A DNA stretch of 64,000 nt from Podarcis filfolensis (Eukaryota), in assembly GCA_964270895.1 (NCBI GenBank), contig OZ185436.1; one strand, written 5' to 3'. The position numbers and the translations under genes are program-made. The stretch's first letter is position 1; each line of letters begins with the position of its first letter. Under the pieces are notes generated by a model. That model saw only the letters and a program-made list of their open reading frames with translations, did not search any database and was not told the DNA's origin. Positions 24,016 to 62,148 of the stretch are shown here, piece by piece.

Positions 24016-24364
24016 CTAGTGAATAACAGAGAGGGAGTTGCAATGAGAGATTTCTATTAACAGACAACAAGTCACCCCTACATGTCCTGCAAGCAACAGA
24101 GGAGGGAATAAGCAAAACCTGCTTATCAGCTCAACTCAGAGTGACAAAGCCCAATACTCCAAGAGCAATAAGTGCAACTGTGTCCTGCAAGCAACCCAAC
24201 AAATCAAATAGATTATTTCATGTTGCTCCTGAGTGTTGCAAGAATAATACTGGGGTCCATGCAAAAGCTTGCAAAGTGCCACATGGTGGAAATTTTTAAA
24301 AAGATGTCTGGCATGGTCTTTTTTCCAGGAACGCCTCATTTTTCTGGCTCCTCTCCCATTTTAC

Positions 24365-24515
24365 CTGTGATATGAAGGGACTGATCTGGTTCTTTATCTG
24401 CATCAAGCGGCCTAGCCCCCGCTCCACGATGGTGGGGAAATTGAGCAACCGTAGTGTGTGCCCAGTGGGTGCTGTGTCAAACACTACCACGGAGAAATTC
24501 ATCCCTTTCACCAAC
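24365..24515 (-). CDS. GET3: GET3 exon 4 ([24 protein letters not shown]...ISPFISQ)
   Basis: 151 nt, switch II DTAPTGH motif, AG/GT boundaries. Confidence 0.97.
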
Positions 24516-24859
24516 CTGTGCAGGCCAGAGAAAGAACCATCAGCTGGAGCAGTTAGAAATAGTCACCTCTTCCTTTATACTGACCTTCCCCAGCATACAT
24601 ATACACTCTAAGGTTCACTTAATGCTAGTGCTTTCTTTGCTCTGTGAACGAAAACTTTGTATGTGGAATCCATATCGTGCAACAATGGATGTTATGGAAC
24701 TTTGGTGCACAAATTTGTCCAGTGCAAAAAATGATGCATAAATCACAAAAGGTTGAATCCAACATTAGCCATACTCACGATTAGAGTCATTTAAATTAAT
24801 GGTCATGGCTAACTTAGGTGAGCCTACTTATTTAAACAACAACTGAAGTCAGCCCCGTA

Positions 24860-25292
24860 CAGTGTTCAAAACTCCCATTGTTCTAGGCACATTTTGCGAC
24901 AGGGATTTCATTAGGGTGAGCAGTTTCTGAGCTCTGGGCGCAATACTGCGCCTAAGATTTCAGATTAAAACTAAAGAGTAGAAGGAAAGGAGGACCTTTT
25001 TCAGCCTTCCCACTTCCAGCTACTCTTCGAAGACTGGAGAAAAGACCCTCTTAAGAATATTAGGGGGGTGGGCAGGGGAAGGACTAGACCCTGTGAAAAA
25101 TGAATATGTTTTAGCTGTCGTTCATTCATTTTCAGATTTGTATTTCTGTTATTTAAAAAGTGTAGTATTATTATTATTTATTTTCTATACCGCCCTATAC
25201 CCGAAGGTATCACACATTCTGTTGTTGTGCCCATAACCTAGTTTTAAGGTGCCATTTAGCTCCCAGCTTTCGTATCTCTGTTTCTAACACTG
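24860..25292. mobile_element. hAT-type MITE
   Basis: TIRs CAGTGTTCAAAAC / GTTTCTAACACTG, 8-bp TSD GCCCCGTA/GCCCTGTA; homologous to 48482-48801. Confidence 0.85.
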
Positions 25293-25752
25293 GCCCTGTA
25301 TAGTAAAGTATTTAATGTTTTATTGCGCTTTTATATTTGTTGGAAGCCACCCAGAGTGGCTGGGGTAAGCCAAGTCAGATGGACAGCATATAAATAAATT
25401 AAATTATTATTACTATTATTACAGGGAGCCTACTTAGTTGGATACAAACCACAAATAATATAATAACTCTGGCCTTGTGCAAAGCATACTCAGTTACTAT
25501 GCTGGACTATCCTAATGGCTAAACCATTAGGCTTGGGATACCTCTGGCTAACCCAAACTTCATAATGGTGAACACAGTAAAATACCTTTGAAGTCTGGTC
25601 TTCTGCTTCTCAACCCAAAAACCGCTTTGAGGTTTGTTTGTTTTTTAACCCACAATCAAGCGGTGTATAAATTTTATGAAATAATAAATAAATAAGCCTC
25701 CCACAGGCTAGAAAAGGTTAGAAGGCTTGATGATCCAGGCCACAGTTCTTAC

Positions 25753-25901
25753 CGCATAACTTCTGCGTAGCTCATGGCCTCATCAATGCCAGGAAAGGCA
25801 CTCATAGCCTCTTGCATCATCTTCTTGCCCATACTCAGCATGTTATCCTCCTCAAAGAACTCATCTGGAAGTTCAGCCACACCTAGGCTGGGATCAATCT
25901 C
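25753..25901 (-). CDS. GET3: GET3 exon 3 ([49 protein letters not shown])
   Basis: 149 nt, AG/GT boundaries, PGIDE motif. Confidence 0.97.
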
Positions 25902-26264
25902 CTGAGAAATAAATAGAAGGATCAGCACCACTTTTCGTAAAACAAAAGCAGAGTCATTCAGCCATTCAAAAAGAAACATGATGTTTAAAACAGAGCTAAA
26001 ACCCCCGATTTGTAGAACAATTCTTTCAATGTCCACTCAAAGAGGCTTTCAAACTAATGCTCACTATGTCAACTCACAGTTAAAAGTAACACCACAAATA
26101 ACTGATTTCTTTGTAATTTGAGGCTATTTTTATGCTTGTCATTGTGGAATACATGGAGGAAAAAGAAAATAACCTCAAGATGTTTGAAAATGTAAATCCA
26201 GCAAAAGGCATACAATCAGCACTATTTGTTGTCAACATTGGACAATTTAGGGTACTTCCCTAAA

Positions 26265-26448
26265 TTTAGGGTACTTCCGGGTTTTGCCACTTGCGCATGC
26301 GCAGACACGCAAAACAATGTCATGCACATGCACAGAAGCGGCGAATTGCAACCCGCGCATGTGCAGACTCGCCGCTGCGGGTTGAGTTTTTTTCATGTTG
26401 CGAATGGGCCTCCAGAACGGATCCCGTTCGCAACCAGAAATACCACTA
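26265..26448. mobile_element. Truncated Tigger-like MITE
   Basis: Right end GTTCGCAACC...TACCACTA-TA; interior resembles 45172-45374. Confidence 0.55.
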
Positions 26449-27174
26449 TATAGTAATTGCATATAAAATCCTTTTTAAAAAAGGTCGGGGAGATTTCCCT
26501 GACATTTGTCTTCCCTGAAGATTATGATAAATGTTGGTTTGAAAAGAAACAAATAATTAGGGTGTTCTCATAGCCCAGTGTGAATTCCTGTGGACATTAC
26601 AACTTCCCACACAGACTTAGTGCTAACCTGCAACTTACAGATACAAAGTGTCATATGCAGAGGGTCTTGTTTTGGAAGCATTTATTTGTATGTGTCAATG
26701 TATTGTCACATGTTATGCTGATCACAGGTTATTTGATAGAAAATATTTTTTCAACTGTTTCTACTAAAGGCTGCTGTAAGTTTGATACTTGCCCATGAAA
26801 CACTAGCTGTTTATGTATATTGCTGCTGATGGAATTTATTTCATTCATAATTTTATAGAATGCAAGTCTAAGTTACAGATAAATTCTCAAGGTTACAAAC
26901 CATTACATTAGTCACATCACTTAAAATACAACGAAGAGAAACCAGTTAGACAAAATATACGATCATCTCCTCACAGTCCAAGACACAGACATTTTGGAGG
27001 AAAACTTCAGTTGGTTTACTTGCCTTATTGCTACATATCATAATCTATTCAGTGTGAAAGAGCAAGATCAGAAAAAAGAATGTTTTCACCCCCTGCCTGA
27101 TCTTTTCCTATATGTAGTAAGAACCTTTTTTTTTTTTGCTCAATACTACCCAGTCCCTTCAGAGGAACACTCAC

Positions 27175-27322
27175 CATGGCAAAAAGGTTATCATAGCCCT
27201 TTACTTTGGTGGGGACTTTTGAAAATTTCTGGTCGAAAGCATCTGATATGTTATGAGCAGGATCGGTGGAGATGATGAGGACACTCTCCCGCACTTTGGA
27301 CAGCTGCACAGCCAGGCTGCAG
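27175..27322 (-). CDS. GET3: GET3 exon 2 ([49 protein letters not shown])
   Basis: 148 nt, switch I STDPAH motif. Confidence 0.97.
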
Positions 27323-28547
27323 CTAGATTCAGGAAGTAAAGCAATGTGCAGTTATTAACATCACAAAAGGAAATACATACAAACATAGAACATAAGCTCT
27401 TCAGCTATCACAGTCTTAGTAGGTCTGTTTGGATTTGTCCACCCTAAGAGATTATGATCCAAAGACTTGCAACTTTGCTTCTCTATGGAGGTGCTTACTT
27501 GGCACAGACAAGTAGCTACTCAGAAGCAGCCAAATCATATGCACATTGGCTTAGCAAAACAGCTCACTCCTGAGTAAGTGTGCACAGAATGACAGCTTCA
27601 GCTATTTAACTTGTGATACCCCCTCTTTCAAGACAGGTTACCTCCCCCCCCCAAAAAAAACCAGGCCAAATAATGTATTACTGAGTTTATTATGAGTCAC
27701 CACAAAGTAAATCTAGAATATATTGAAAGCCCACACTTTAAAAGGTTTAACCCTAGACATCAAAATCCAACACACACACACAGACCAGCCAAAATTTAAT
27801 AGCCTCTAATACTTGTATTCTAAGTTCTGATCTACAATTTTAAAAATCTTTTTGAAGAAAAGGCATTGCACAATGGGAAACCTACCACTACAAGGTTATT
27901 CCACAACAGCAATGCTAATATAATCAAGAAGGTATTGTTGGCAGAGTTGCACAAGGAAATAGGCAAGCTACAAATTAAGTCAATCCAAGCCATTTGGGGG
28001 TTTACAAGATAAAGCTATGCCTAGAAGGCAGTGAGGGTTCAGTCCAAGTACCAGAACAATTACATTCTTCAGAATTTGTCTGAAAATGCATTCTGCTCTA
28101 AATGAAGTTTTCAGTCATCAAGGACAACCACACATAAAAGCAGCTTCAAATACTTAGTCTTGAGATTAAGAAGGCGTAAATGACCACTGTCAAAATATGA
28201 ATCTGAAAAAGGAAGGCACCCAACCCCTATGCTTCTGCTCAGTTTCATCCAGTCTCGCATCTGAAGCAGGGTGCCCCAAATCCCATGATATTTACATACA
28301 GTGGCATGAAGGTGCATACAATTCGCTTGCCTAATAAGACACTATTCTCCATAGCTTAATGAGATGCGGACGTTCAACAGGTAGAGCTTTTGCCAGCAGA
28401 GGTTCAGGGGCATGAAAGCTGCGCTTGCTGGGTTTCTGCCTGTCACACAGCTCCTGAAAAGGCACAGCAGCAGCTGCCAAGGAGAGAGAAAGGCGGAGGC
28501 AGCAATGTCTGCCATCCTTCCCAACGACATCTCCCTGACCAACCCAC

Positions 28548-28711
28548 CTGCAGGTGGTCTTGCCAACGCCACCCTTCCCTCCGACGAAAATCCATTTCAG
28601 GCTCCGCTGCTCGATGATGTTACTCAGTGTCGGTTCCAGCGGCTCCACGTCTGGTGCGTCCTCGAACTCATCCGCCTCAGTCGCCAACCCAGATGCCGCC
28701 GCCGTCGCCAT
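28548..28711 (-). CDS. GET3: GET3 exon 1 ([54 protein letters not shown])
   Basis: ATG at 28711 in AAGATGG context, deviant Walker [11 protein letters not shown] donor. All seven exons give 349 aa. Confidence 0.97.
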
Positions 28712-29650
28712 CTTGAAACCAAAATCACGTGACAAGACGCAGAGCTACACCATCTTGTAGGGAGATTCAGGTTGGTTGTCCCCGCTCAGCGCCTTCGCTC
28801 ATTAACAGGAAGCAAGGCGCGCAAGTACTCTTCCCGACCTCGCCCTGCTCTTCAGATCCTTCAATCACACAAGATGCTCAAACCGGTGCGTCACAAAAAG
28901 GTTGAGTAACACAGTAATCGCACCCCTTCCTAGTCGGCTGATATGGTCTTGCCCACACTTGTCTTATCTCAGCCTATAGGCCGGCAGCTTCCTTTCTTGA
29001 TTGGCTCCTGAACCGCTTTCTGAAGGAGCTCCCACCCACCCCAAACGCCCGCCTCCCGCTGTTTCTGATTGGTAAAATGCTCACTCCATCATCGATTTCC
29101 CCCCCCCCCCGAAGGCTGCGGCCCGTTGCCTTTTTTGATTGGCTCAGAAGGCCTGTCAGTATCCCGCAGGGCGGACGCGCCCTGTCGGTCTGCGATACTT
29201 CTCCTTTTTTTTTTTTTGACGTGCGTGGGCAGCCTAGCAACGTCGCCTCTCCCGTCGTGCTTTGCGGCGCCGGCGTCGTCACCGCTCCCCACCGTGCGCC
29301 AGGGCGCGTACGCTCAAGGCAGGGAGGGCGGCGCAAGATGGCGGCGGCGCAAGGCAGGGGCCCAGGCTCCGAGGCGGCCGGGCCGGGCGGAGTGAACGTG
29401 TTCGCCAACGACGGCTCCTTCCTAGAGCTCTTCAAGCGGCGCATGGAAGAGGCCGCCGCCGCGGGAGGGAGGAGCGGACCGGGAGCGGGGAAAGCGGGGG
29501 CCGAAAAGCAGAGAGAGACCGAGTCTCGGCCGGAGCCGCCCGGGGAACAGGAGCCGCCGGAAAAGAAGCGGAGCGGGAGCGCCCTCAGCTTCGTAAGGGA
29601 TCCGGGCCCTGACACCCCCTCCTCCCCTTTCCCTTGGCTTACTCCTCTTC
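28700..29650. promoter_or_regulatory. CpG-island bidirectional promoter shared by GET3 and TRIR
   Basis: ATGs are 627 bp apart head to head. ATTGG at 29000, 29068 and 29138; E-box TCACGTGA near 28726; YY1-type AAGATGGCG over both start codons. Confidence 0.85.
29338..29592 (+). CDS. TRIR: TRIR/C19orf43 exon 1 (MAAAQGRG...GGVNVFANDGSFLELFKRRMEE...SALSF)
   Basis: Conserved FANDGSFLELFK motif; donor TTC|GTAAGG. Confidence 0.93.
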
Positions 29651-37238: not shown

Positions 37239-39207
37239 TACCATTGAATTAGAAATGGCTCTCCACCTTTGGGGAGACAATATGAGTTTTTAAAAATGTC
37301 ATCCCTGCCATTATTATTTTTTCTACTTCTACATTCCTCTCTCCCCTGCTATTTGGTGCAAGCATGTGTTGAAAGTATTGCAAAGGTAAACATGAAACTT
37401 GTAGCAAACCAGCTACAAATCAGGCCCTGATGTGACTGCTGGAGAAGCAGCCTTCAGGAACATAGTTTGAATTTTATCTACTGCTCTACTCCATTTCCCA
37501 TCTCCTGTCATCCCTTTAAGACAACAACTACACTGCTCCTTATTAGTTGTTGCTGTTCCTTCAAGGCAAGAAAGCTCTCTAGGGAACTGGGCTGCAGCTG
37601 CTTCTCTGCTCACCACCCTTGGGATCCTGCTATTGAAAAGTGGTTTGTATGTAGCTTAGAAAGCAGCTGCTGCTATTCCTTTCCTGGGACAATAAGGAAA
37701 GAGGAAGGGCCCAAGTCTCAGCATGGACCTTGCAACTCTAAAATTATGCCTGATCAAAAATGGACTAACCACCAAGTCCATCTTTTGCAAAAGACAAAAG
37801 GTAGTACAGAAAAGAAACACTGATGATTGACCAGTAGAAGAATTCTCCTTGTCAAGTGCTGCTGACATTCATTTTAGCTGGAAAGAGTGATGGAAGAAAA
37901 GGGATATGAGCAGTCCGCTTTGCCCAAATACTTATTTCTACAAGGGATTATATGCAATCTATTTTATTTCCATTTGAATGCAACACACATCAGTTTTACT
38001 TTCAAGTGCTAGATCCTTGTTAAGGACAATGCATAATCAGAAAAGCACTTTCACGCCTCTCCACTTGCAAGGCAATAAACAGCATGACTAAGGGAAGCCT
38101 TTCCAAACAGTGGGCTTGCTGCATGGCATTAATCGCTAGCAGTTTCTTATGGGACAAGAGTCTTCATTTTGTGTAAGGCAAACAGAGTAAACATTGGGCA
38201 AACAAACAGTTTCTTTACCCTTTACAATAGTGCACTTGAATGCCTTAACCTACCATCTGTAGAGGAAGCTTTTGTACTTCATCACTAACTTACTAAAAAG
38301 CTGTTATTTAACAAATAACTCTTCTGTCTCCTTCACCTTAAAAGCATCTTAAAATCTTTACAAGCAGAAGAGAGGAAGTGAAAAGTATGTATCGTTCACT
38401 CCTAGTTGAAACATGAACCTTTAAACAGAAGCACTCTGACTCCAACTACAGAAATCAAGCTCAAGTCCCCGCCAAGGTCGCTGCTCCAAATTGCCCCCAC
38501 AAAGAACTGAGACAAACCCCTTAGACTTGTTTTGTGCATTGTAGCACAAGTGCTACTGGGTAAGATTTCAATAGTGGCCAAGCTTTAAAGACGCCTGTTT
38601 CCCACCTGGTTAAAAGAAGCATTTGTGGGATAATGGAGAAATGCTTTAAAAAAACTCAACACTTCTCAAAACTCCAGATTCTGCCACAAACCAACCAGAG
38701 TTGATGTGACAATGCTAAAACTCCTTTTCTGGATTTGACATTACAAGATCTTTGCAACCAGTGTCAGCTTTAAACAACTCTCTCTTTTGGGTCAAAGAGT
38801 TGCAGTCCCCTCCCATGTAACACCCCAGACCTGTACTTGATAACTCAGTGGGGATTTAAACAGGTACGTGGGTAAGAATAGTCCTAAGGAACAATCTTGA
38901 TCTTCTTAAAAAGAAAAGAAAAAAACAGCATTTGTGGGTGGAGTGAAAGGACAATTCTTGCTTTGCCATTTCGCCCCCAGTCTCCACCTACTCTGGTTAC
39001 AATTCTCAAATATGGCACAAGTCAGCCTTTAGCACAGCCAGCCAAGCTAGAATGGTTCTGTGTTGTCCTCAAGGCCTGGGATCAGATTCTCTGCCATAGG
39101 ATCTTTGGTGTATCCCAGAAGTGTGCAAATAAAAGAGTGTGCCACATCCCAGCCCCCCACACAGCCAGAGCCTGGAAGCATTAACAAGAGCAGGGCACCG
39201 AGCCACC

Positions 39208-39379
39208 TCAGTTAGTCTCGTAGGAGGACAGAAGAGCAGCGTCAACTGGCTCCATGCAAGAAGGGCAGGTGAATGATCGCATCAGCCAGTCGTCAATGCA
39301 GTGAACGTGGTAGATGTGCAGGCAGGGCAAGAACCGGATGGGGTCTCCGTATACAAAATCCAGCATGCAGATCACACAC
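39208..39379 (-). CDS. RNF11-like: RNF11-like exon 3: RING-H2 (CVICMLDFVYGDPIRFLPCLHIYHVHCIDDWLMRSFTCPSCMEPVDAALLSSYETN*)
   Basis: C3H2C3 ligands intact, 172 nt, near-identical to the RNF11 C-terminus. Confidence 0.93.
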
Positions 39380-40019
39380 CTGAAATCAGGCAGAAAAAAA
39401 AGGAAATGTTATTAAAGACACTAAGATGGCTTCTAAAACTTCTCTCTTGCATTCCCTGCCCAATTTGCCACCACGTGGTAAGTTCAGGTATCCCAGTAAA
39501 GAACTACTACCTGGCAAGTCATCTGGTCTCACTATTCCATTCTTAACAGTGTCCAATACTGGTTGTGGTGCTGGAAAGCATGCAAGCCTGTTACACACAG
39601 AGCGCTCTATCTTAAATAGTTTGCTTCTGACTTCCAAGGTTCAAGGATGACCCTCCACCTACATCTATTCCAAAACATGGACATTACCCCAGCTGAAAGT
39701 TGCTGCTGTATATTCACATTTTATTGGATGTTTTTAAATACACGCTGTCTTCATAGCAAAGAACTATTTAAGGTTAGATGGATGCAGAGGCTGAAGAGAA
39801 CAATATTTCACTTTAAATATGATGCATGTTAATTTCACCTTGTGTTATATAGCTGGGGGGAAATATTGCTGTGTTGGAAAAATGATGGTGGGGAACTAAC
39901 TTTTGCCTAAATTAAGTTTTGTATGAAGTCTGAGGAATTGAGGCAAATTGGGGTCTGAATCTACTCAAGAGATCTCAAAGAACTCAAATATGAAGTTTCT
40001 GACTTAATAAGAATATGTA

Positions 40020-40261
40020 CAGTGGTACCTCGGGTTAAGAACTTAATTTGTTCCAGAGGTCTGTTCTTAACCTGAAACTGCTCTTAACCTGAGGTACCAC
40101 TTTAGCTAATGGGGCCTCCTGCCACCGCCTCGCCGCTACCACGCAATTTCTGTTCTCATCCTGAAGCAAAGTTCTTAACCCGAGGTATTATTTCTGGGTT
40201 AGCGGAGCCTGTAACCTGAAGTGTCTGTAACCTGAAGTGACTGTAACCTGAGGTACCACTC
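40020..40261. mobile_element. Tigger-like MITE, same family as 1328-1569
   Basis: TA-CAGTGGTACCTC...GAGGTACCACTC-TA. Confidence 0.9.
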
Positions 40262-40289
40262 TATATTGTTCCAAAGATCAACCTCCACA

Positions 40290-40490
40290 TCTGAAGATGA
40301 AAGTAGCCAATGTGACACTAATTTTTAAAATGGGATCCAGGGGGAATCCTAGAAATTACAGGCTGGTTAGCTTAACACCTGTCCTGAAAAAAACTGCTAA
40401 AATGACCAAGCATATAGAAGTACAAACCTTACTAAAGCAGACAGAAAGTGGAGTCCCACAAGAATTAGTATTGGGACCTGTACTTTTTTT
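40290..40490 (+). mobile_element. CR1 reverse-transcriptase fragments
   Basis: KVANVTLIFKMGSRGNPRNYRLVSLT joined to SGVPQELVLGPVLF, with an internal deletion. Confidence 0.75.
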
Positions 40491-41016
40491 AAAAAAACAA
40501 CAAGCTAGAGCAGATAAGCCTTTCCTTCAGGAGTGGAAGCCCTTCCAAACCTCTAAAGCCCATTCTACTTTTTAGCCATTTTCCCGACTCCCCAGCTTTT
40601 GAGATGGCTTCCTGCCTTTTTCTTCAAGTCCCCTTTCCAGTAGTTTAAGATCCTGCAATGTTGCCTAATGAGTTATTCAATAATATAGTTGCTCCATTTG
40701 GAAAATAGATTCAAAGGGCTTTTTTTTAAAAAAAGGGGTCAGTTGATACAAGAGTGTACAACAACATGCTATGGAAATAAGGACAATTTCCCATATGCTT
40801 TACAGACTACCACAATGGCCGGGTATAATTTTGTTTTAGGACAGCAAGTCATCATTTTTTAAAACCAAGAATTGGACAGTACAATATACCCATATTCCAT
40901 TTTGGAAAGGGAATTGCTACACACTGTCAGTGGGATATAAAGGCTATATATGCATCTACTAGCAAATAGTCTCAGTAAACTGGATAAACACAAAGCATTA
41001 CACATGGAAAACATAC

Positions 41017-41186
41017 TCTTTGATTTTCTTTTCCGATGGCTCTGTGCCTGGATCAAATATTCCTTTGGGAAGATGTTGAATCAGCCCAATCCTCTGAGCT
41101 ATACGGATCTGCTCCTCTTCTGTTAGTTGTGTGGCAAGACGTGCCTGGCTGGGCGTTGGGTGATATACTGGAATTGGTGCATGTTC
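41017..41186 (-). CDS. RNF11-like: RNF11-like exon 2 (EHAPIPVYHPTPSQARLATQLTEEEQIRIAQRIGLIQHLPKGIFDPGTEPSEKKIKE)
   Basis: 170 nt, AG/GT boundaries, RNF11 central motif TEEEQIRIAQRIGLIQHLPKG. Confidence 0.93.
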
Positions 41187-43449
41187 CTAGAAATTCAGAA
41201 GACAGAGTGGCTGAGTGATTGCTACTCTTGTAACCAGCCAGTAATCAAATGGAGATAAACCCACACTCAACATACAGCAATTCAGCCGTCAACTATTCTT
41301 TCTTCACAGACCCCTATATTACTCCAGTAGAGCTAGTTATTCAACATATTTCCACAGATGTGGCAAAACTAAATAACCCTGCAGGCTCCTACATTGACAT
41401 ACTTAACTTTTTGGCATATGCAAGCTGTAACTGTCAGATAATATCTACTCTGTAGTACACCAGATGGGCTAAATCATGGTGCTGTCATGTTTCTGATTGG
41501 GATTTTAAGTTTTTACAGGGGAGTGAGCCAGCAGTTGCTAACTAAACAGCAAATGCATCATTTGCAGATGCGTAAGAAGCCCTTCTGTCTGCTATGGACT
41601 CTGGTGTTGGGATCCTTGCAGAACTAATTAACTCACCATAAAACAATCAGATCCATCTCTTGCTCCTCTATTTTGGGATGTATCTAGACAAACATTTATT
41701 GTGAGACAGTGGTCCAATAATATACTGTTAGCTTGGAATGCCCATGCCCCCAATTGCTTTCATGCAGCAGAATGCCCTTGCTCCCAAGCCACTGCGTTTA
41801 AAATGAAGACATTTTAGCAAATTGCAAGTTGCCCCCATAGAGATGCATTAAATTACTGGTCTCTAAAGCAGATGATAATTGTTAGGAACACTGCCCCAAT
41901 CAAGATTTGGGACACAAGAATTGCAGTGCTGGCTGAAATCAATAGTCTACCTAATTCAGCATTTTGTCTAAAAGTGGCCAGTCAAAAGCTAAAGAAGTTT
42001 AGAAGCAGAACATCCATTCTATGTTGTTAGTAAACATTATCCAATCATCTGTGGTACACTCTTCTTAAATATGGAAGTTCCTCAGTGTATTTATCATTTG
42101 TTTATTTCCTTTAGAAAGCAATCTATAATATAATAGTGTAGGGATTTTTGTGTGTGTGAAGCAGGTTTTTCATTTGTCTAATCCGCTGCCTATATGTTTC
42201 AGGAGGTAACCCAAAGAGTTTCTGAAATTAATGTGAATAAATTCCCCACACATTCTAACAGCCATCTTCCCAAGATCCACTCTGGTACTTTGAGATATGG
42301 AATCCTGATGTTTTGTTCTAGCCACCCTTTTAAACTAAGTTTGTGCTGCCTTTACCTTCCCCAGGTTTCAAACAGGATGAAACCACCAGAATTTCCCTCA
42401 GTTTTTCCTAATTCTTCTTCCATAGACTGTCTGTCCCCACATTGGAGAATGCTACTCTGCAGGTATGGCAGCTTGCAAAAATGCCAGAGAAACATGCAGC
42501 TGCTCCACAATAAACCTCAGACATGGGAAAGCAAATATCAAAGGCACACAGGACAGCTGTTGAAATGGACAAGACGTAACAATCATGCGTGTTCTGTGTC
42601 ATTTTTCTGCAGAAAGAGATGGTGGTGTTATGAAATCTGACTCTGCGTTCCTGGTTACCACAGCCTGGAACTCAACATCTTCTAAAGATTTGTCAGGATG
42701 GGTGAACGCACACCTAGCATAAGATAGCCTGGAGTCTAAACATTCATTTTCAACCAAGCCTATTTAGTAATTGATTGGTTATGTTCAGTACTGTACTGCT
42801 CATTGAGAGCCATTTCCCACATTAACCCAGGTTTGCCACCAAACATACAATTTGTGGGGCTGCAGTCAATCTTGGCCCACCAACAAACATACCTGTATGA
42901 TGCCTGTACTTCAAAGCAGGTCCTGTCACATTTACATTCTACATTGTAAGTTGTATACTTCATCATGCGGAGCAGTTCACAGCTCAACATGAATTTGGGT
43001 CTCCTCACTTCAGATCCACAGCTCATTCTTATAAATCACACCACACTATTTCTGCTCCCCAGTTCTTATCTTCTATAACTGACTCATGACTTTGAGTTTA
43101 TCTGAATGCCCACCACGACCCCAGCCCTAGTCACACAACTCATGTTTCCATAGCTTTTTGAGAGAACCTTGACCTATGACCCCAGACTCACACACCACAG
43201 TCCAAAGGTTAAAGGGCAATACTAATGGCAGTGCAAAAATATTATCTTTCTGTGCTTGACACTGTTCTGTCTCCTGCTCAACCTTGTACATCCATTCCCA
43301 AGCCAATAATGGGCTTAACTCACCCCAGTAACATCTACTCTCTAGGTGACTGTAGGGCGAGGGGGCATCAAGCCCCATTCTTGTGTCTCCTTAGCATACC
43401 TGGATGAGGTCGGGGGTCTCCACCCTAATCTGTTATCCCGGTTTCTTTC

Positions 43450-44080
43450 TATAGCTACTGTTCCAGCTCACCCCGCCCTACTTACCCCAAGAACCCGAAG
43501 CCAAAGCCAATAGCCGACCCCTGTGCACCCCTCAAAATGCCACCCGAATTTCCTCGCCCCATATGTCGGCTTCCTACTCCCTTGCGTAGCAGAACCCCGT
43601 AGGCTACCCAGGGCTGGCCCCGACGCCCAGCACCGCAGTCGCCGAGGCCTGGGGGAACCCGCCCCACAGCCCCCCTTTCGCCCTCCGCCCCGCAACCCCC
43701 GACCCGCTACCTGGTAGGGGGGCGGCGGGACAGGGATGGGCGGTGGAGACGGATCCCCAGGCCCAAGGCTCGCCCCATCGCCGGTAGAGTCGTTGAGCAG
43801 CGACAGGTCATCGGCCGCCTGCGAGGAAAGGCAGCCCCCCATGCTCGCCCGAGCCCGCCCGCTCGGGGCCGCTGCCGGGTCCGGCCCGGGCAACCTCCCT
43901 CCCCCAGCTCCGGAATGGGAGGGGGGCGCAGGGGAGGAGCGGCGTGTCGCAAGTCTTATCGGGAAATGTAGTTCTAGAGACTGGATCTCCGCGCTTGCGC
44001 AGTGTGAAGCAACCCGACCGCGGAAGGATAGGGCGTAGCAGCGGAAAATAGACGGAAAGGTAAACTGGCATTCCGATAGG
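43450..44080 (-). promoter_or_regulatory. CpG island / promoter of the RNF11-like gene
   Basis: Very GC/CpG-rich; ACTACATTTCCC (ZNF143/THAP11-type) on the minus strand at 43961-43972. Confidence 0.75.
43711..43842 (-). CDS. RNF11-like: RNF11-like exon 1 (MGGCLSSQAADDLSLLNDSTGDGASLGPGDPSPPPIPVPPPPYQ)
   Basis: G2/C4 acylation motif, DDLSLL dileucine signal, PPPY motif, donor CAG|GTAGCG. Confidence 0.92.
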
Positions 44081-44828
44081 CAGCGATAAACAAAAGAAGC
44101 ACCTTCAAACGGTATTACAGCGTAGCTTTAATTAAATCTGAACATTTCTATGCGCAGCAGAGTTTAAGTCCATAACTATTCATCTAATTACTAATTTTCA
44201 TGTTTCGGTTGCGATCTACATTATGTCGGAAGTAAATAGCATAAAAAGGTAGACCAACCAACCGAGTTGTTCTTGAGTGCTCGGGCTGAGGATCACATCT
44301 GAACCAGGAGAATCTTACTTCAATATTACGTGTAAAGTTTAAACTGTCTAAATCCTGCTTGGTGCATTGATTTGTTCCGGATTAGGAGACCAGGGTTCAA
44401 CGCCCCCTCCCCGCGAAGCCCACTGGGTGATCTTGGGCAACACACTGCCTTTCTGCCTACTCTATCATACAGGATTGCTGTGAGGATTAAATGCGGGGGG
44501 TAGAGAACCGTATCTATCACCTTGAGTGCTTGGGAGGAAAAGCGGGATATGAAAATGCTACTTATATGACAGTGAATTTTTACTATGAGCCCTTGAGTTT
44601 TCTGTAATGTTCATCATAAGTTGTATCCAACACTGCTGTTCATATAGACTTCCCATCCTCTCCAACTCTTCCATCCTGCCATGTGCTCTCGAAATCTGCT
44701 CTGGTGGGTTTTCCAGAGCAAACTATGGGAGTAGCATGACCTTTGGCCTTTGACCATCTGTGGCCTTTTAAAAGTAGGTGAGAAGTATTTAATGTATTTT
44801 TCCTCTGGGTTTTAATGTATCTATATAT

Positions 44829-49152: not shown

Positions 49153-49702
<550 letters not shown>

Positions 49703-49778
49703 AAACTGAAGCAGCTGAACCAGTTTCCTGATTTCAATAACTACTTGATATTTGTATTGACACGACTGAAATCTGAGG
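49703..49778 (+). CDS. TNPO2: TNPO2 coding exon 2 ([25 protein letters not shown])
   Basis: 76 nt, in frame. Confidence 0.96.
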
Positions 49779-51052
49779 GTATGTCAGTTACATCTGTCAC
49801 GATGAAAGTTTGAGAAAAACGTCGTGGTATCTTGCCTTTATTGTATAATATCAAGGATTTAACTGCTAATTTAGAATTATGGCAGAATAATGTATTTGCT
49901 TGATTGATACCTGTTTTGCTTCAGAAAGTACTATCTGGTGTAGAGGTTGGAAAGGGTTCCCTTTCCCTTTGGTGCTGAACTAGTAATTGTTTTTGTTCTC
50001 TGTTCTGCCTTGCTATGAAAAGTGAGTCAAATTCTAGCAAGGAATTCAACTGTCAGAATTTTGCCAGACACTGATAATCTTCATCTTTTTTTACAGTGGA
50101 GATTATACTGCTTTCTTTTGGTGGGAGGGGGTGCAGAAAGAATGTAAGGATTAATACATAAGTTTGGTTTTGGGTGTCTGTGTGTGTGTATATTTATAAT
50201 GAAAGGGTCTGCACAGGAGGGTAGGAATGCAAGCCCATTGTAAACACACAGATGACCAGTAAGGGACCTTGTAGAATAGATAAAGATAAAGGTGCTCTGT
50301 TTCTATGGTGACCAGAGGTGTCCAGTTTTTAACTGCTTTTTAGCCATGCCCAAAGAAATGAAATTATTTGGATCACTACATATCCTGTGCTCTGTAAGCT
50401 CCTGTCAATCAGCTGATAGATAGGATTGTGCACAAGGCTTTGTAGGTACTTTGGATGAGCTGATGGGCGGTGCCTGCAAGTCACCTTTTGGCCCAGCTGT
50501 GTCTTCCTTCCCAACACCTGATGTGGCTTGGCGAAGGTGACTTCTTGGGCCAAATGGTGAAGGCCTAAATAGGCCTATGGGCCGGAGTCTCCCCACTGCT
50601 GGATTTTAGGAGGAACAGGTCCTACAGAAGCATCCCATTGCAACTCACTTTGGCAAGGGGGATATAAGAGCGATACTGGGAGTGTGTCTGAATAGAAATA
50701 GCATACCTGCAGCATATCCAGGTGTCAACAATTGAGGATCATAAAAATTTGATTGCAACAAAGTAGAGCATTATTTGTATTCATATACAGTTCTAAAAAT
50801 GCTAAGGAACCACAGTATGTAGAATGAAAAAAAATGCATAACGCTTGTTAAGTTAATGAGTAAAATCCTATCGAATGATTGCATTACTGTTTCAGTTCAT
50901 GATTATCGAGGAATATCTAGTGATCCTCATTTCCCCCCTGCATCTCTGCTTAGGTCACCATTATTACTGTGGGGTTGTTGGTTTTTGTACCTGCCTGTGT
51001 ACAGTATATTGGGTCTTAGAGAATTAATTTCTTTTCTCCAAAATCTTTCTAA

Positions 51053-51271
<219 letters not shown>

Positions 51272-52077
51272 TGAAAGTGTATTCTTGAGTAGCGTTTGTA
51301 TTCTTACACTGGGCAAAGCATTTGCAGGGTGGGAAGAGAGTTACGTTAGTGTTTTCAGTGCTGTTTGTATTCTCAATGAGAGATAAGTCTCTAAATAGCA
51401 GATGCTGCTTTTACTTGCAGTTAATTCAAGTAAGTGAGTGGGAATTTTACTAACTTTTTGTGTAGGTGCATATATAAATAGTAGATGATGCTCATGAACA
51501 TGGTGAAGCGAGCTGAGTGCAGAGGTGGGAAGGTTGACATAGGACTATGATATTAAGGTCGTGTGTGGGTGAAGGGTGTCTGTCTCGTGGCAAATATGCT
51601 TGTGTAAGCTGCAAAATATTCTCTTTTCCCCTGTTTCTTGGCTTCCTCAAACCAAATAAGCAAAATATACATGCTTGTGGGAAGGATATGCACAATTAAT
51701 TTTTGAATTACTTAGAGATACCAACTGTTGCTGGCTTTCTAAGATTGATAGGTGTCAGTGAGTTCAGCACTCCTGGCAACTGCAATGCATGGGGCAAGGA
51801 GGGCAAGCCAAATGCTTTCACTCTACTGCAGGAGATCTCAGAGCAGTTCACGGATCAGCTCAAAGTATTCTAGAGGCAGCTTTCAGTTCAAAGGCCAAAT
51901 ACTATAGATGACTGATTGGTAGAAGCATCTCATAGAGCCTTGGTTTGGATCATAGTTTCGGTCAGAAGTATTAAACTCTGTTGCTTCTGAAAGTTCAAGG
52001 GAGAGTTGGTGGGTACAAGAAGTTAAACTGGGCTTGTGATGTGATATTGAACTGCAGCCTGTTCTTTCTCTTGGTAG

Positions 52078-52184
52078 GTATTCTTATTACCACCATTGCT
52101 TCCAAAGGGGAGCTGCAGATGTGGCCAGAACTTCTGCCCCAACTTTGCAACCTGCTCAACTCTGAGGACTACAATACATGTGAA
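52078..52184 (+). CDS. TNPO2: TNPO2 coding exon 4 ([35 protein letters not shown])
   Basis: 107 nt, AG/GT boundaries. Confidence 0.96.
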
Positions 52185-52344
52185 GTGAGTTTAATTGCAA
52201 TAGGTTAATAATTGATAATAGGCAACAAGATTGTGTAAGTAATTACTTTTTAGCATGACTGGCTGTAGCACAGCAATCTTGTGCCACAACTTACTAATGT
52301 AATTTGCATCCCAATCCTATGCATATCTACTCTGATGTAAGTCT

Positions 52345-53130
52345 TGTAGAGTCACAGGTAAGGGACTGCTACTCTGTTGGTTCTCCTGAATCTCTCAGCA
52401 GCTTTCAGTACTGTTGACCATTGTATCCTTCTGGATCATTTCTCAGGGTTAGGCTTAAGAGACAGTTTTACAGTGGTTCTCATCCTTTCTGGAGGTATAG
52501 TTCCAGAAGGTGGTCCTGGAGAACTTCTGCTGTACCCCATGGCTGTTGGTTTAAGGGTCCATTTTGTCCCACTTCAGCTTGACACCTACATGAAATTGTT
52601 GGGGGAGGTCCTCTGAGAGTTTGGGCTACAGTGTCATCGGTATGCAAATTATGTCCGGTTCTACCTCTTATTTCCATCTTCTGATCCTAGGGAGGCTGTT
52701 GAAATTCTTAACTGGTATTTGGAGGTGATTCTGGGGTGGCTGAGGGTGAACAAAGCTCAGGCTAAATCCAGATAAGACAGAGGTACCATAGGTAGGGCGG
52801 TTCTCCAGAAGGTGGTTTACAACTGGTTCTTGATGGAGTTGCATTGCTAAGTGCGCAGGTTGAGCACTGTTGTGGCCTTAGCCCTGGCTGGGAAAGCTCA
52901 GGTGGCAGTGGTGTCCAGGAATATGCTTTACCAGCTAGACTGGTATGCCAGCTTGCAGTTCTAGCTGGACAGACTGGGCCATGGCTGACTTATTCATGCT
53001 CTAGTCATATCTGGGTTTGACTGCTGCCGTGTTTGTGAAGATGTCATTAAAGCCTATTCAGAAACTTCAGCTGGTCCAGAATGTGACTGACTGAGTTCTG
53101 TTAAGAGCTGGGCGATTGGCACACAAAACA
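52345..53130 (+). mobile_element. Decayed L2-clade LINE reverse-transcriptase fragment
   Basis: VLLNLSAAFSTVDHCILLD (LDLSAAFDTVDH motif), frameshifted downstream. Further L2-like 3' pieces near 54040-54300. Confidence 0.8.
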
Positions 53131-53635
53131 CCATTACTGTACCAGCAGTACTGGTTACTGATGCATTTCCGAGCCCAGTTAAAGTGCTGGTTATATCCTT
53201 TATGTTGATTACAACCATTAAACAGAAGTACAAAATAAAAAGTAGTACAAAATTAATATAGTAGAACCAATTATGCGTTATTAAAACTGACAAGCTAAGA
53301 ACTAACCATCTTTACAAATCTAAGAAATATTACATTCAGATATATTGCCAGCTGTTCAGTAATTGATTTATTAGACCATTTAAAGAAGATTCTCAAAAGG
53401 GTCCATAAGATCGACTAGGAAACTGTCTCTTAAGGAGCTAAATTATGCTTTCGATAACTCCTTGATAACATCTATAGTAGAAGAACCCATGATAGACTGT
53501 TTCCAAAGGACTGAACCTATCCTTCAAGGGACCATTGGCAAATCTCGTGCCTAGGATCTTAAGAGGGTAAACAGTGCCAGCAAAACTGTTCTTCTGTATT
53601 TTGATAGTTAGAAAGTTTAGATAAGGAGTTGTGAT

Positions 53636-53979
53636 CAGTGTTCGAAATTCACCAGGCGCCAGGGACATTTTGTACCTGGCTGTTGGCCACTTGCATCCAA
53701 GTGAAGATGCCCAGGTGCCAGGATGGCACCTGATGTTTCCACCATCTGGAGGTGCATGTCTGGGGATCGGATCCTTGGATCTTGACTTTTCACACACTAG
53801 CAACACGTTCTGTAGAATTCTATTTGTTTATTCCATCTGCACAATCAGAATGAATTTCAGGAACCAAAAAGTGATATTTAAAAATATGGCTCTGAAGCTG
53901 TCTGACCCGCAAATGGCAACTAACCCTGGTTTAAGGAGCCATTTGACACCTAGCTTAAATATCTGAGTTTCTAACACTG
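53636..53979. mobile_element. hAT-type MITE with perfect 8-bp TSD
   Basis: CAGTGTTCGAAAT...GTTTCTAACACTG, flanked by GTTGTGAT on both sides. Confidence 0.88.
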
Positions 53980-55199
53980 GTTGTGATCTTTAAAACCTTA
54001 AATGGTTTGTATCCCATATATTTGAAAGTCTGCCTACACCTGTACCAACCTTCTCACTATTTGAGTTCAACAGTGGAGGCCCTTCTTGTTTGCCCCACAC
54101 CAATAATAATTACATTGGTTAGTATGAGAGAGCGACAGAGAGCACATTTTCCATTGTAGCCCCACAGCTTTGGAATCTTTTCCAGTTGGGTTCCACCAGA
54201 CTATTAACACTGTGCAGACCTTTTGGAAAGATCTGAAAACCTGTCCCTTTTCAGTGGCTTTTAGTTGAAAGAGTTTTATTGAGCTTTGCTACTATGTTGG
54301 CTGTTGGTTTTGTTGGTTACTGGTTTGTTTTAATATATAATTATATATTAGTATTTATGTTAGTGTTTCTATTGGAAGCCTCCTTCCAATAGGAGCTTTT
54401 ACTCTTTTGAGAAAGAGAGTTTACTCTTGAAAGAGGTACGTTAATATAGTAATACAGTGAAATTATATGTGTGTGTGTGTGTAGGAGCATATCCTTAAAA
54501 GGTTAAATGTGAATTTTAAGACTGTTTTTTATTAAATAAAACAGTTTATTACTAGGTGGCTATTCACCTAGCCTGACAGAGATGTAATTTTCATGTGACA
54601 TAAGTGTTCTTTCTGTATGCAGTGGCATCCAAATAGCACTGCTACTCCACTGTTAGTGTCATGGACCAGTTTTTCATTAACCCAGTAAGAACCCTGAATT
54701 AATCTGGGTGGATAAGGTAGGGTGTATGAAAAGGGAGCAATTTTGAGCTGTGTTCTAAGGGTGAGGTCAGAGATTATTAATCTAAAGCCATTTTCCTTTT
54801 CAACTTGAAGTTCCCCACCCTGTTCCAGGAATATTCTAGCCCCCAGCCAAACCTGCCACCATCATTTTTTCTTCAGATAGGCTTTTTCTCTTTAAAAACA
54901 ATCCTATTGCTACATCTCTTGTAGCATCCGTAGCTATTTAGGCAATTAGTTGGCATATATCAGACTGTTGCGTAGGAAGTCTGGCTGAGGGTAGGAGGAC
55001 AACACGTTCTTTCAAATTGGCAGTCTGTCACTTAGATGGTTTTCCTTTGGCGTAGACCTCAAAATGAATGTAGCTCATGCCAGAAGAGCAATTTGAGCAT
55101 TGAAAGTCTAGCTATCATTGTCGGATTTAAATGCTCAGATGCACTTTGCCTGTTTCCTAACCTCACATATTTGGTGGCGACTATTTCTATGTTCTCTAG

Positions 55200-55379
<180 letters not shown>

Positions 55380-56588
55380 TGAGAAGGATGTGCTCTTGTT
55401 GAATATTGCACATGTGGTGGAGTTGCCCTCCTTATCCAGGCAGCATCGGAAGTAAAGAATGGTTTGACAGACTTGGCCAAATTGCAAAACTGTCATGTAA
55501 AGGAATGTTTATTGTAAAGTGGCATTCTTTACTTTTGGAAGTGTGATTGTTACACTGATAGCTGTATACTGTATATAATGTAATTGTTATTGTAAATACA
55601 TTTTATGTTTGTATGCAGTCCTTATAGTAGTAATCTTCTTCTTCTTTGGCGATCACTTGTAGCTGAGTAAGATAGTAATAATAAAACCTAACTGACCAAA
55701 AACCTCACAAACAAATCATTGACTAAGCAGCATAATGGCTTAGTTCAGACATGTATCAAATAGGCCATGATTTATTAGACTTTGGGGCCCAGTGCTTGTG
55801 CCCACATCCTCCTTCCTCTATCGCACCTTCTTCCTTTCTTGCATCAGAATATTTGCAGGGTTAATTAAACCACAGTTTCCAGTTATAACTGAATCTCTGC
55901 CTGTAAACCAAAATATGAAGGCCTAATCTGATGTTGGTTTCATGTCCTGATTTGTAATTGATTAAACTGCACTTTTCATGTTCAGATGTAATTGGAAACT
56001 GGCTTAATAAACCCTGGCAGTATTGAATTCCAGAGTGATGGGGAGGAAGCATGTGGGCACAAGGCTCATTCTTGGCCAGATAGATAGATAAATCTGTCCT
56101 AACCAGTCCTGTGTCTCCAGTAATTCAGTTCCAATTAGAGATGGAAATGTAAAAGGCAATAAAATGTTGCCTATTCTGCCAACCCATTATTTGAGGTCTG
56201 TGGGAAAAGCCCTGTTGCTGGTCCCTCCAGTGAATCTGGCCAATGGAATGGCGATTTGTGAAAGGACCTTTTTCATAGCAGTGCACCAATTGTGTAACTA
56301 CTTCTGTGGACAAGTGCATCTGTCCCATGCATTGTTGGCATTTAAATGCAGACTAAAGTTATATATATTGCTGAGGCCCTTGGCACATGAATGCCTACTG
56401 CAATCTCGGTTGCTGGCTTCTGCATATGATTTTTAATGAGGTGTTGTATATGTTATTTTAAGTCAGAAATTAAAATTGACATAAATGTTGATTTTTGGCT
56501 TGTTTACATTGCAAAACTGTTCCTTGGTACCCAGAAAAAACTGCAATTAAGCTAACAGAATGCATTGATGTTCACTTATTGGAGGTAA

Positions 56589-56747
<159 letters not shown>

Positions 56748-57912
56748 TGATTATTGAAAGCTGAAGCATCACAGTCCATGACTGTTTATTTATTAGGCAC
56801 AGAGTTCTGGGACTTAATACCTGTAAGGGATGCTCTTGATGTTAGCTGGTCTACCAAGAAATTCTTGAATGTTTGCCACTGACCTCTGTGCATTTATAGA
56901 TCCTGCATAATGTTCTAGGGTATACACGAGTTCACCCATTGCCCTTGCCAGACCCCTTTGGCCTCATTGTTGCCCTATGCAAACAAAGTGCTTTACTGAA
57001 AGTGCTCCCCTGTAGCTGCATAGTGGCAGGGAAAGTTAACAGGAGCAGTTGAGCAGTTTTTCAGAGAAATGTATCCATAATTTGTTGATCTACCTCCTTG
57101 AGGGAACACCTGATATGGTCCTAGAAATTCCTGAATTCCCCAGATCACCGTTTGTGTTAGCCTAGCACAATGACTTTGAATCTTCTCAACTGTTAGTTCA
57201 TTATTTTTTTTAGGCCAGTTTTTCCTCTGCAGCCCTCGTAATATCTGCATTTTGCCTTCTTTTGTAAATGTAGGGAGTGCCAGATCTTAAAGCTTTTGTC
57301 CGCTTCTTAATAAGATCTTTTTTAAAAAGGGAAGATAAGGATTTTTAGCACTTGCATCCTAAGCTTTCTTGTGTCTCAGTGACTTCTTTCTACTGCAGTA
57401 ACATATCCATGGCCAGAGGCAGCCTTAGGAAATACAGGCTCCAGTACAGAGAGAAAGGTATTTGGTTCTTAACACCAACATACTCCTTTGCTTCAGGCCT
57501 AGTCAAACATAGTATGGCCCTAGCTATGCTTCCTGAGACCAATGTTTCTGTTGTATTGTGCTACCACTGCAGGCAGTGTCTGTAAAAACCTCAAAATGTT
57601 CATAGGCTAGAACATATAGTTGGTCCTCTCTACTTTGTATGCTTTTTGGTTGTGTTCCTCTTATATACACCAATTGTCTACTAACTGTGTGTCATTTTGT
57701 TACCACACCTCCACTTGCCAAAAATACTAAGCTTGCAGAGAACTTAAGAGTTCACAGGCAAAATAAGCACATTTGTGTATTTATTGGCACAAGAGCCCTG
57801 AGCATAATGCTTCTCTGCTGTCTGGCCAAGTTGCAGCAAGTCTAGAAGAACCATCTCTGTGTTGGAAGGCACAGGTTTGGGCCAGTTGAAGGGGATGGTG
57901 TTTGATTCTTAG

Positions 57913-58116
<204 letters not shown>

Positions 58117-58370
58117 TAAAATGCTGCCTTGCCTTTGTTTGTTTCAGCCACTAGACTCTAAATGATATATCTAGAAGTGCCACCAAGTCTGCCAGAAGGT
58201 GATGGGAGCTGATTTGGGATTTCATCTCTTGATAGCATTCCATGTTAGTGGATCAATACTGTGACTGAGTAGGCATAATTATGCCACTTGTTCGGTAGAG
58301 GGTTTCCTTCATGAATTGATGCCGCTGACCTGGCATGTCACAGCAAAATGCTGCTGTATTTTGCTGGTAA

Positions 58371-58577
<207 letters not shown>

Positions 58578-59817
58578 TGAGTAGCTTTGCCTCTGCAGTA
58601 CTAGCATTCTAAGTTGCATGTTATGAAGCCCAGTTTTACTTTGCTTCCTGGTTGACTTAAGTCATGGCTAGGGGCTGCCACCCCTGTTTGCTCCATTCAC
58701 CAACCCTTTTGTTGATCCTCCACCAATCCAATTCCTCCTTTCCTTTAAACCTGACCAATCTCCATCCCTTTAAACCTCACCCATCCCCTGAGCCCCACCC
58801 CCTTTTAAGGGAAGGGGAGATGCTTTAGAAAACTATTCTGAAGCACCTTCCCCACTTCGTTAAATAGCTCGCCTGGGCCACCTGCCACCCATGCTGCTTG
58901 CCTGCTTGATGTTCTTTCACCATGCTGGCTGCCATGCAAAATGCAGCATGACAGCAGCCTTACATTTTTATGTAAATTGTACCTTTGTACATGTATATTG
59001 TACATTTTTATGTACAATAGGGCAGTGAGACTCCCAGATATCTTAGACTTACTAGATTTGAAGGGGCTTGGGCATCTGCATGTCCATTCTCCCTGCACAT
59101 GGTATTATTGCATGTTTCTTCGGCTGTAGCTTTGTGCAAAAACAAATTAAGGCAAAAGCTGGCATGTTGCTAAGCTAGTTTTGCTCAGCTCAGCTTAGCT
59201 TTATCTTTATTTTCATATTTTAAGCATATATGCTTATAGTCTATCTAGTGAATCTAGTACAGGGCTCTTCCAAGTTAGAGGTGTGGAGCCCTTCAACATT
59301 CCTTCAATTCTGTTTTTTCTGCACTTCATCATTACTGCAAAGTTGGGGAGAATTGCCAGATACGTGCAGTATGACTGAACATTCGGAGCTGGGACAGAAA
59401 GGGATTTTTAAAATGGAAGAGTTCAAGGGAAAGGTGGCTGCTATGGAGTTGCTGTGCATACATGTTGCGTGCCCAGAGTACCTGTTTCTCTTTCCAACTT
59501 GGCAGCAGAGAATAGCATTTTGTGCTAGCCACAACCTTGTGGGCGTGGGATTGCATGGGTTATAAATTACTGCTGGACTTTTCTATCTGGCAGTAGTGGC
59601 ACTTACACTAAGCAGTGTGTAAACGCTTGCTGCAAGGAAATCTGCATTGTAGAGGGCATTATCTGAACAGAAGCTACTGAAATTCCACCTCCACATGCAC
59701 AATGACATTACTGCTCCTATTTGCCAATGATTAACTTCAGCACCTACTGTGGTCTATGTCATTCTTGCCCCAGGACCCAGTTGGTGAATCACTTTTTCTC
59801 CTCCTTCTCCTTAACAG

Positions 59818-59878
59818 ATTGATTCCAATTTTGGTGAATGGAATGAAGTATTCTGAAATTGACATCATATTGTTAAAG
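59818..59878 (+). CDS. TNPO2: TNPO2 coding exon 9 (LIPILVNGMKYSEIDIILLK)
   Basis: 61 nt, AG/GT boundaries. Confidence 0.96.
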
Positions 59879-60602: not shown

Positions 60603-60669
60603 TGGAAATGATGCATAACCTTCAGCCTGACAACTGTGATGGGTTGTTGTATTCGTCCTGTCTGATCCA
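60603..60669 (+). ncRNA. SNORD41-like C/D-box snoRNA paralogue with a variant guide
   Basis: C box ATGATGC 60608-14, D' CTGA 60627-30, C' GTGATGG 60636-42, guide TGTATTCGTCCTG, D box CTGA 60662-65, terminal stem TGGA/TCCA extendable to about 13 bp. Confidence 0.75.
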
Positions 60670-61708: not shown

Positions 61709-62047
<339 letters not shown>

Positions 62048-62148
62048 TAAACTAGGGGTTTGCATTTGCAAGAAGGGAAAGGCATTGGCACCAACTTCAT
62101 GTGAACAAGAATTTGGCAGCCCTCTGATATGCCTAGAAAGTATGCTGA

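Follow-up and report, generated by a model that had tools for sequence, protein, structure and literature searches.

A Podarcis ortholog of rnf11a, probably the faster-evolving member of an ancient vertebrate RNF11 gene pair

Results

We analyzed a stretch of 64,000 nucleotides from the lizard Podarcis filfolensis (assembly GCA_964270895.1, contig OZ185436.1; hereafter the window), which carries an RNF11-like gene on its minus strand, between two genes that we take to be TRIR and TNPO2. Our results suggest that this gene is the Podarcis ortholog of rnf11a, the faster partner of an RNF11 pair that predates jawed vertebrates and that most likely originated in the early vertebrate genome duplications. 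We assign this reading a probability of approximately 0.88; the origin by whole-genome duplication is well supported but not proven. The gene itself is already known in RefSeq, in UniProt and in fish nomenclature. Indeed, the gene of the window is annotated as 'RING finger protein 11-like' in P. muralis (XP_028573207), P. raffonei (XP_053232414), P. lilfordi (CAI5766375) and many other squamates. RefSeq uses this name in reptiles, ratites, frogs and marsupials; in fish and sharks the gene is annotated as rnf11a.

Phylogeny of the RNF11 family

Two N-terminal types, A and B, were recognized among the full-length search hits. The A type, MG(N/G)CL(S/F)SQ..DDLSLLN(D/E)S, was found in squamates, tuatara, turtles, alligator, emu, ostrich, kiwi, frogs, coelacanth and teleosts. 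Sharks and rays present a variant of this type (MGNCFKSQ..DD(I/V)SLLN), named rnf11a, and the A type of marsupials carries an N-terminal insert of 13 residues. The B type begins with MGNCLKSPTSDDISLLHESQSDRAS and represents the canonical RNF11 of mammals, birds, reptiles and amphibians, as well as rnf11b in teleosts, sharks and chimaera. A preliminary description of the window had spoken of a gene kept in lizards, which is too narrow given the presence of the A type in sharks, fishes, frogs, reptiles, ratites and marsupials.

A tree of 55 full-length proteins was built with IQ-TREE under LG+C20, using one hagfish sequence as the sole outgroup. The split between A and B received a support of 98/96 and each group was recovered whole in 98% of the bootstrap trees. 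Clade A contains sharks and rays (eight), teleosts (eight), frogs (three), a turtle, an alligator, ratites (three), squamates (six) and marsupials (seven), and its internal branching (sharks, teleosts, frogs, amniotes) roughly follows the species tree. The lizard protein is located inside the well-supported clade formed by the six squamates. Clade B gathers the RNF11 proteins of mouse, marsupial, snake, bird, turtle, amphibian, teleost, shark and chimaera, which form an unresolved grade beside the hagfish root because B hardly changes. These results agree with the initial proposal of a paralog outside canonical RNF11: no nesting of the lizard protein inside the RNF11 clade was seen. Because both clades hold cartilaginous and bony vertebrates, the duplication is older than the split between sharks and bony vertebrates. 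Both rnf11a and rnf11b are carried by Carcharodon and Cetorhinus, and teleosts and tetrapods likewise have both copies.

Alternatively, the gene could be a young duplicate or a retrocopy born within reptiles, as might be suggested by its identity of approximately 80% to RNF11 and by an NCBI name that merely ends in '-like'. However, orthologs from sharks to marsupials present the same N-terminal signature and the two introns are found at positions conserved in the family. The tree and the intron positions refute this scenario, whose probability we consider negligible. It is also conceivable that the gene is the lizard's sole RNF11, merely relocated beside TNPO2: UniProt names the Podarcis protein 'RING finger protein 11', and our look-ups by protein cluster and by exact sequence yielded no canonical RNF11 for Podarcis. 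Nevertheless, the protein falls outside the canonical clade with a support of 98/96, and the same clade occupies the same slot in emu, koala and Xenopus. Moreover, four other squamates (Candoia, Pogona, Lerista and Protobothrops) carry both A and B copies, and the canonical copy of the boa adjoins a TTC39A-like gene. A relocated sole RNF11 therefore appears extremely unlikely.

Several points weigh against our identification of the gene as the rnf11a member of an old pair. Hagfish is the only root, so the tree gives no timing relative to the split from invertebrates. Canonical RNF11 was not recovered from Podarcis: the big RNF11 clusters list no Podarcis among the members shown, and an exact look-up of a partial RNF11 sequence of 113 residues, common to 134 amniote taxa, returned ten loci, none of them from a known Podarcis assembly. 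The presence of this gene in the Podarcis genome is nonetheless implied by the four other squamates with both copies. In addition, the A protein diverges approximately ten times faster than B, so that the function of A may differ. The A type also lacks Lys6, a listed ubiquitination site in RNF11 (LSSQ in place of LKSP). Finally, acylation, sorting, WW binding and ligase activity would all be properties carried over from RNF11.

Gene structure and start codon

The gene is composed of three coding exons on the minus strand and its product is 157 residues long. The coding part of exon 1 (43711..43842; 132 nt, 44 codons) starts with an ATG at 43842, encodes MGGC, DDLSLL and the proline run to PPPY-Q, and ends in phase 0 before a GT donor (43710-43709). 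Exon 2 (41017..41186; 170 nt) is bordered by AG and GT and encodes the conserved linker, with the stretch from PVYHPTPSQ to KKIK; its last codon is split as GA and G. Following another AG acceptor, exon 3 (39208..39379; 172 nt including the stop at 39208-39210) encodes the RING-H2 domain and the C-terminal DAALL. The exons are separated by intron 1 (41187..43710; 2524 nt) and intron 2 (39380..41016; 1637 nt), both on the minus strand with GT/AG borders as read in the window, and a polypyrimidine tract precedes each of the two acceptors.

The exon translations are 100% identical to the P. lilfordi protein (P0180, 157 residues), which itself corresponds to residues 77-233 of the P. muralis protein P0001. 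This residue-identical P. lilfordi protein was used as the whole-protein reference and the exons themselves were searched and compared singly. At the DNA level, the window and the P. lilfordi locus share 97-98.5% identity, with two synonymous differences in the coding sequence. Exon 2 is also present in the koala, emu, Xenopus, lumpfish, shark, Varanus and Eublepharis loci. Three exons of 132, 170 and 172 nt encoding 157 residues had been described initially, and this model is borne out by the coordinates, the GT/AG borders, the phases and the perfect match to P. lilfordi. The gene was also correctly described as distinct from a retrocopy, since its two GT/AG introns are found at positions common to all orthologs.

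The introns contain open reading frames at 42194-42637 (plus strand) and 42763-43026 (minus strand) for intron 1, and at 40297-40572 (plus strand) for intron 2. A Pfam search yielded no matches for any of these frames and we found no sign of nested genes. Within intron 2 (window 40000-40300), short repeated units 'taacctgaag/taacctgagg' were observed beside 'ggtacctcgggttaagaac', a pattern that resembles an interspersed repeat.

Upstream of the ATG, 77 codons are open in frame and include no ATG. In P. muralis and P. raffonei, RefSeq models of 233 residues use an upstream start, and the corresponding stretch is found in another frame in the window. The upstream ATG of these models is out of frame in the window (43843-44073, minus strand), for which one base in a C run appears responsible. 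Because of this frame difference, the N-terminal extension is not conserved even inside Podarcis. An annotation artefact is the probable source of this extension, which would leave the myristoylation glycine in the interior of the chain. The Met-Gly start of the 157-residue models, which is needed for myristoylation, is the credible start.

A CpG island (43400..44400) covers exon 1 and the presumed promoter, with a GC content of 0.56-0.72. Its ratio of observed to expected CpG is 0.71-1.04, as compared to 0.30 for the whole window. The gene was initially credited with a CpG island of its own and this island is indeed distinct from that of TNPO2 (45800-47400). Between both islands, a weaker CpG-enriched stretch was observed at 44800-45400 (GC content 0.53, observed-to-expected ratio 0.72). 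At the other end of the gene, a pattern scan identified the first AATAAA below the stop (37963..37968, minus strand) as a candidate poly(A) signal, which would imply a 3' untranslated region of approximately 1.2 kb.

Selective constraint and divergence from canonical RNF11

We compared codons exon by exon and summed the results, without joining the exons. The ratio of nonsynonymous to synonymous divergence (dN/dS) was 0.029 relative to Varanus and 0.053 relative to Eublepharis, at a synonymous divergence (dS) of 0.49. Ratios of 0.04-0.09 were obtained relative to koala, Xenopus, lumpfish, emu and shark, for which dS is saturated. This measurement had been suggested in the preliminary description and the values within squamates (0.03-0.05) point to strong constraint, i.e., to strong purifying selection on the lizard gene. 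An intact-looking but silent relic could be imagined in the lizard. However, the low dN/dS was maintained over approximately 0.5 synonymous changes per site among squamates, the CpG island has been retained together with all the motif residues, and RefSeq models exist in many squamates. We therefore consider a silent relic to be very improbable.

The two members of the pair have evolved at different rates. The lizard A protein shares 78% of its residues with shark A and 80-87% with the A proteins of emu, teleost, koala and frog. For B, the snake protein is 99% identical to that of shark and 97-99% identical to those of teleost, frog, bird and mouse. These comparisons indicate a strongly asymmetric pair in which A is the faster, derived copy.

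Lizard A and canonical RNF11 (human and mouse, B type) share an organization in three coding exons and present Gly2, Cys4, D11-D12, S14, L15-L16, PPxY, the RING-H2 domain and DAALL at the same positions. Both also have the RSFT site ahead of the final two cysteines. Their overall identity is approximately 80% and, in the exon encoding the RING domain, 52 of the 56 residues match mouse and snake in our alignment of relatives (alignment A1). In contrast, residues 5-10 read LSSQAA in A and LKSPTS in RNF11, KIKE replaces KIRE before the RING domain, and squamates have a longer proline run ahead of PPxY; a diverged N-terminus and a longer proline run had been reported initially. Canonical RNF11 belongs to the other orthology group and is found at another locus. 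The closest relatives of the lizard gene are rnf11a of teleosts, sharks and coelacanth and the 'RNF11-like' genes of frogs, turtles, crocodilians, ratites and marsupials, which fall in the same clade and present the N-terminal signature CL(S/F)SQ...DDLSLLN(D/E)S. Those of the tetrapods examined are also located in the TNPO2/TRIR/GET3 neighborhood, as in the lizard. Relative to other rnf11a proteins, squamate A presents Gly3 instead of Asn3 and an insertion of 4-11 residues in the proline run.

Genomic neighborhood and origin of the pair

In the window, the RNF11-like gene is flanked on one side by a small gene, the putative TRIR, whose first coding exon is an open reading frame at 29338..29598 (plus strand), tail to tail with the RNF11-like gene. 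It is followed by exons of GET3, an ArsA-type ATPase (open reading frames at 24296..28711, minus strand; ArsA_ATPase matches with E-values down to 2.6e-17). On the other side, TNPO2 coding exons (open reading frames at 49237..64000, plus strand; HEAT_EZ match, E=4.3e-16) are arranged head to head with the RNF11-like gene, each of the two genes having one CpG island. To identify neighbors, we relied on the Pfam labels that called genes had received and on tblastn searches with the exon peptides of the window. The Pfam search assigned no family to the putative TRIR gene. We assume the names TRIR and TNPO2 from position and from the human proteins, with a human order FBXW9-TNPO2-TRIR-GET3-BEST2-HOOK2 in which the slot of the lizard gene would be empty.

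This neighborhood is conserved in the tetrapods examined. The TNPO2 exon peptides are 94-100% identical to an IBN_N/HEAT gene upstream of the A-type gene in emu and koala. In emu and Xenopus, the putative TRIR peptide was found between the A-type gene and GET3; in koala, it was found beside the A-type gene. In emu, the order is an F-box/WD40 (FBXW9-like) gene, TNPO2, the A-type gene, the small TRIR-like gene, GET3 and a HOOK gene. The order TNPO2, A-type gene, small gene was found in both koala and P. lilfordi, and Xenopus presents the A-type gene, the small gene and GET3, the TNPO2 side being not seen at the Xenopus locus. The slot between TRIR and TNPO2, as initially described for the window, is therefore real and is kept in emu and koala, with the TRIR-GET3 side kept in Xenopus. 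In lumpfish, rnf11a adjoins an NFI gene, with heme oxygenase, and in Heterodontus it adjoins KRI1; neither copy is beside TNPO2 within 10 kb. The tight TNPO2-rnf11a-TRIR arrangement may thus be a tetrapod feature.

The canonical copy is located elsewhere. In the boa Candoia aspera, RNF11 of the B type has a DUF4718 gene on one side and a TTC39-type TPR (TTC39A-like) gene on the other, and the A and B copies are on different chromosome records. The neighbors seen are HOOK in emu, NFI in lumpfish and KRI1 in shark for A, and the TTC39A-like and DUF4718 genes for B. Human RNF11 is presumably located at 1p32.3, flanked by TTC39A and C1orf185. We further take HOOK1 and NFIA to lie nearby on human 1p32-p31, and HOOK2 and NFIX at 19p13.13.

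The preliminary description had interpreted the gene as an ohnolog derived from whole-genome duplication. Our results support this in that the duplication predates jawed vertebrates and the two copies are found in different conserved neighborhoods; set against the human map, the few neighbors seen also fit the proposed paralogon. It is possible that the old pair was instead generated before jawed vertebrates by a small local or segmental duplication, a scenario which the small number of neighbors seen (HOOK, NFI and KRI1 by A; TTC39A-like and DUF4718 by B) leaves some room for. However, the copies are on different chromosomes, their neighbors presumably belong to the paralogous 19p13 and 1p32-p31 blocks (HOOK2/HOOK1, NFIX/NFIA), and the age of the duplication suits the early vertebrate duplications. 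We consider a local duplication unlikely and favor whole-genome duplication.

Protein motifs and proposed function

The motifs that had been listed for the protein (MGxC, DDLSLL, PPPY and a full RING-H2) were all recovered by the exon translations, the alignment and the Pfam match. The N-terminus reads MGGC (Met1-Gly2 and Cys4), and M1, G2 and C4 are invariant in the alignment. An acidic dileucine motif is formed by D11-D12-L-S14-L15-L16. The PY motif, PPPY43, is followed by Q at the end of exon 1 and its tyrosine is kept in all the non-marsupial sequences of the alignment. The RING-H2 domain (C3H2C3) has the spacing C-x2-C-x14-C-x-H-x2-H-x2-C-x10-C-x2-C, and the identical P. lilfordi protein matches Pfam zf-RING_2 with an E-value of 3.9e-13 (49.9 bits relative to a cut-off of 27.3). 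The lizard protein also presents the C-terminal DAALL. A sequence search of our copy of the Protein Data Bank returned no RNF11 chain. The closest structures to the RING exon are the solved RING-H2 domains of RLIM, RNF38 and Arkadia (E-values of 1e-13 to 5e-12), whose alignment to the lizard protein is confined to the RING domain.

The functional residues of RNF11 have been mapped in a 2020 review (PMC7697665). Gly2 is myristoylated and Cys4 palmitoylated, both being needed for membrane location. D11/D12 and L15-L16 constitute two overlapping signals, DxxxLL and DxxLL, which serve AP-2 and the VHS domains of GGA. SMURF2 and further HECT ligases are bound through the PPxY tyrosine Y40, 144-DAALL-148 is a signal for endosomal sorting, and Ser14 and Thr135 are phosphorylation sites (PMC7697665). 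In the lizard protein, G2, C4, D11, D12, S14, L15, L16, the PPxY tyrosine, all eight RING ligands and DAALL are at positions that agree with this map. Because all of these residues are in place, an RNF11-like mechanism can be proposed. By analogy to RNF11, the protein would be N-myristoylated on Gly2 and palmitoylated on Cys4, and the acidic dileucine signals would sort it to the Golgi-endosome system. The PPxY motif would bind the WW domains of HECT ligases of the NEDD4 family (ITCH, SMURF, NEDD4 and WWP), and the RING-H2 domain would engage E2 enzymes. Its net role might then be that of a membrane-anchored, endosome-cycling adaptor or modulator of ubiquitination by HECT ligases. As for expression, a Logan contig of 1471 nt holds an uninterrupted A-type coding sequence, so that at least one other species transcribes and splices an A-type ortholog. 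The lizard gene itself is presumably expressed.

Distribution in mammals and birds

The gene had initially been described as lost in mammals, which is only partly the case. At least nine marsupials possess an A-type protein: koala, wombat, sugar glider, brushtail possum, tammar wallaby, Dromiciops, Gracilinanus, Tasmanian devil and antechinus. In koala the gene occupies the TNPO2-TRIR slot. Canonical RNF11 is recorded as well for sugar glider and Tasmanian devil. When the koala protein was used as query, the best non-marsupial matches were reptile proteins of the A type (264-278 bits), followed by the B type (approximately 250 bits and below). The claim stands for placentals: no A type was found among the matches listed for the koala or the Podarcis query, and every placental match was of the B type. 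This supports the absence of the gene from placentals at the level of annotated proteins.

Monotremes and neognath birds are cases of 'not seen'. No monotreme A type was present among the matches listed for the same two queries. Likewise, no neognath A type was present among the matches listed, in which the birds with the A type are exclusively palaeognaths (emu, ostrich and kiwi). The neognath pattern may reflect a real loss or a gap in assemblies of GC-rich microchromosomes.

The marsupial proteins are changing. In seven species, the position of the PY tyrosine is occupied by C, Y, P, C, Y, H and S, and exons 2 and 3 are almost invariant. Both dasyurid models (Tasmanian devil and antechinus) are devoid of the dileucine and PY segment. 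It looks as though this lineage, which is close to the placentals and their lack of the gene, has lost the WW-binding function. One may tentatively imagine that rnf11a is a functionally diverged endosomal adaptor and no redundant spare, with Lys6 absent, a changed N-terminal sorting region and a tenfold faster evolution, and that WW binding became dispensable on the mammalian stem, leading to the erosion of the PY motif in marsupials and to the complete loss of the gene in placentals. We regard this scenario as possible but doubtful.

Discussion

Work on RNF11 has dealt with its regulation of NF-kB, TGF-beta and EGFR signaling through ITCH, SMURF and A20 complexes. The second member of the family has received far less attention: our search of the literature on rnf11a, rnf11b and RNF11 ohnologs found incidental mentions only. 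The 2020 review of RNF11 (PMC7697665) uses the words 'paralogue' and 'zebrafish' zero times, and its abstract describes the sequence of RNF11 as substantially unchanged through vertebrate evolution (PMC7697665). The gene rnf11a is thus known but neglected and almost unstudied. The discovery is modest, since the gene had been annotated before and its copy in the lizard is unremarkable; it adds one more case of an ancient duplicate that placentals lack.

Our results indicate that most non-placental vertebrates carry a second, faster-evolving copy of RNF11. This matters for the reading of knock-outs in zebrafish and Xenopus, where rnf11a could compensate for the loss of RNF11. Finally, if rnf11a were a functionally diverged adaptor, non-mammalian vertebrates would regulate the ligases of the NEDD4 family with two distinct adaptors, and the literature on mammalian RNF11 would cover half of the ancestral system.

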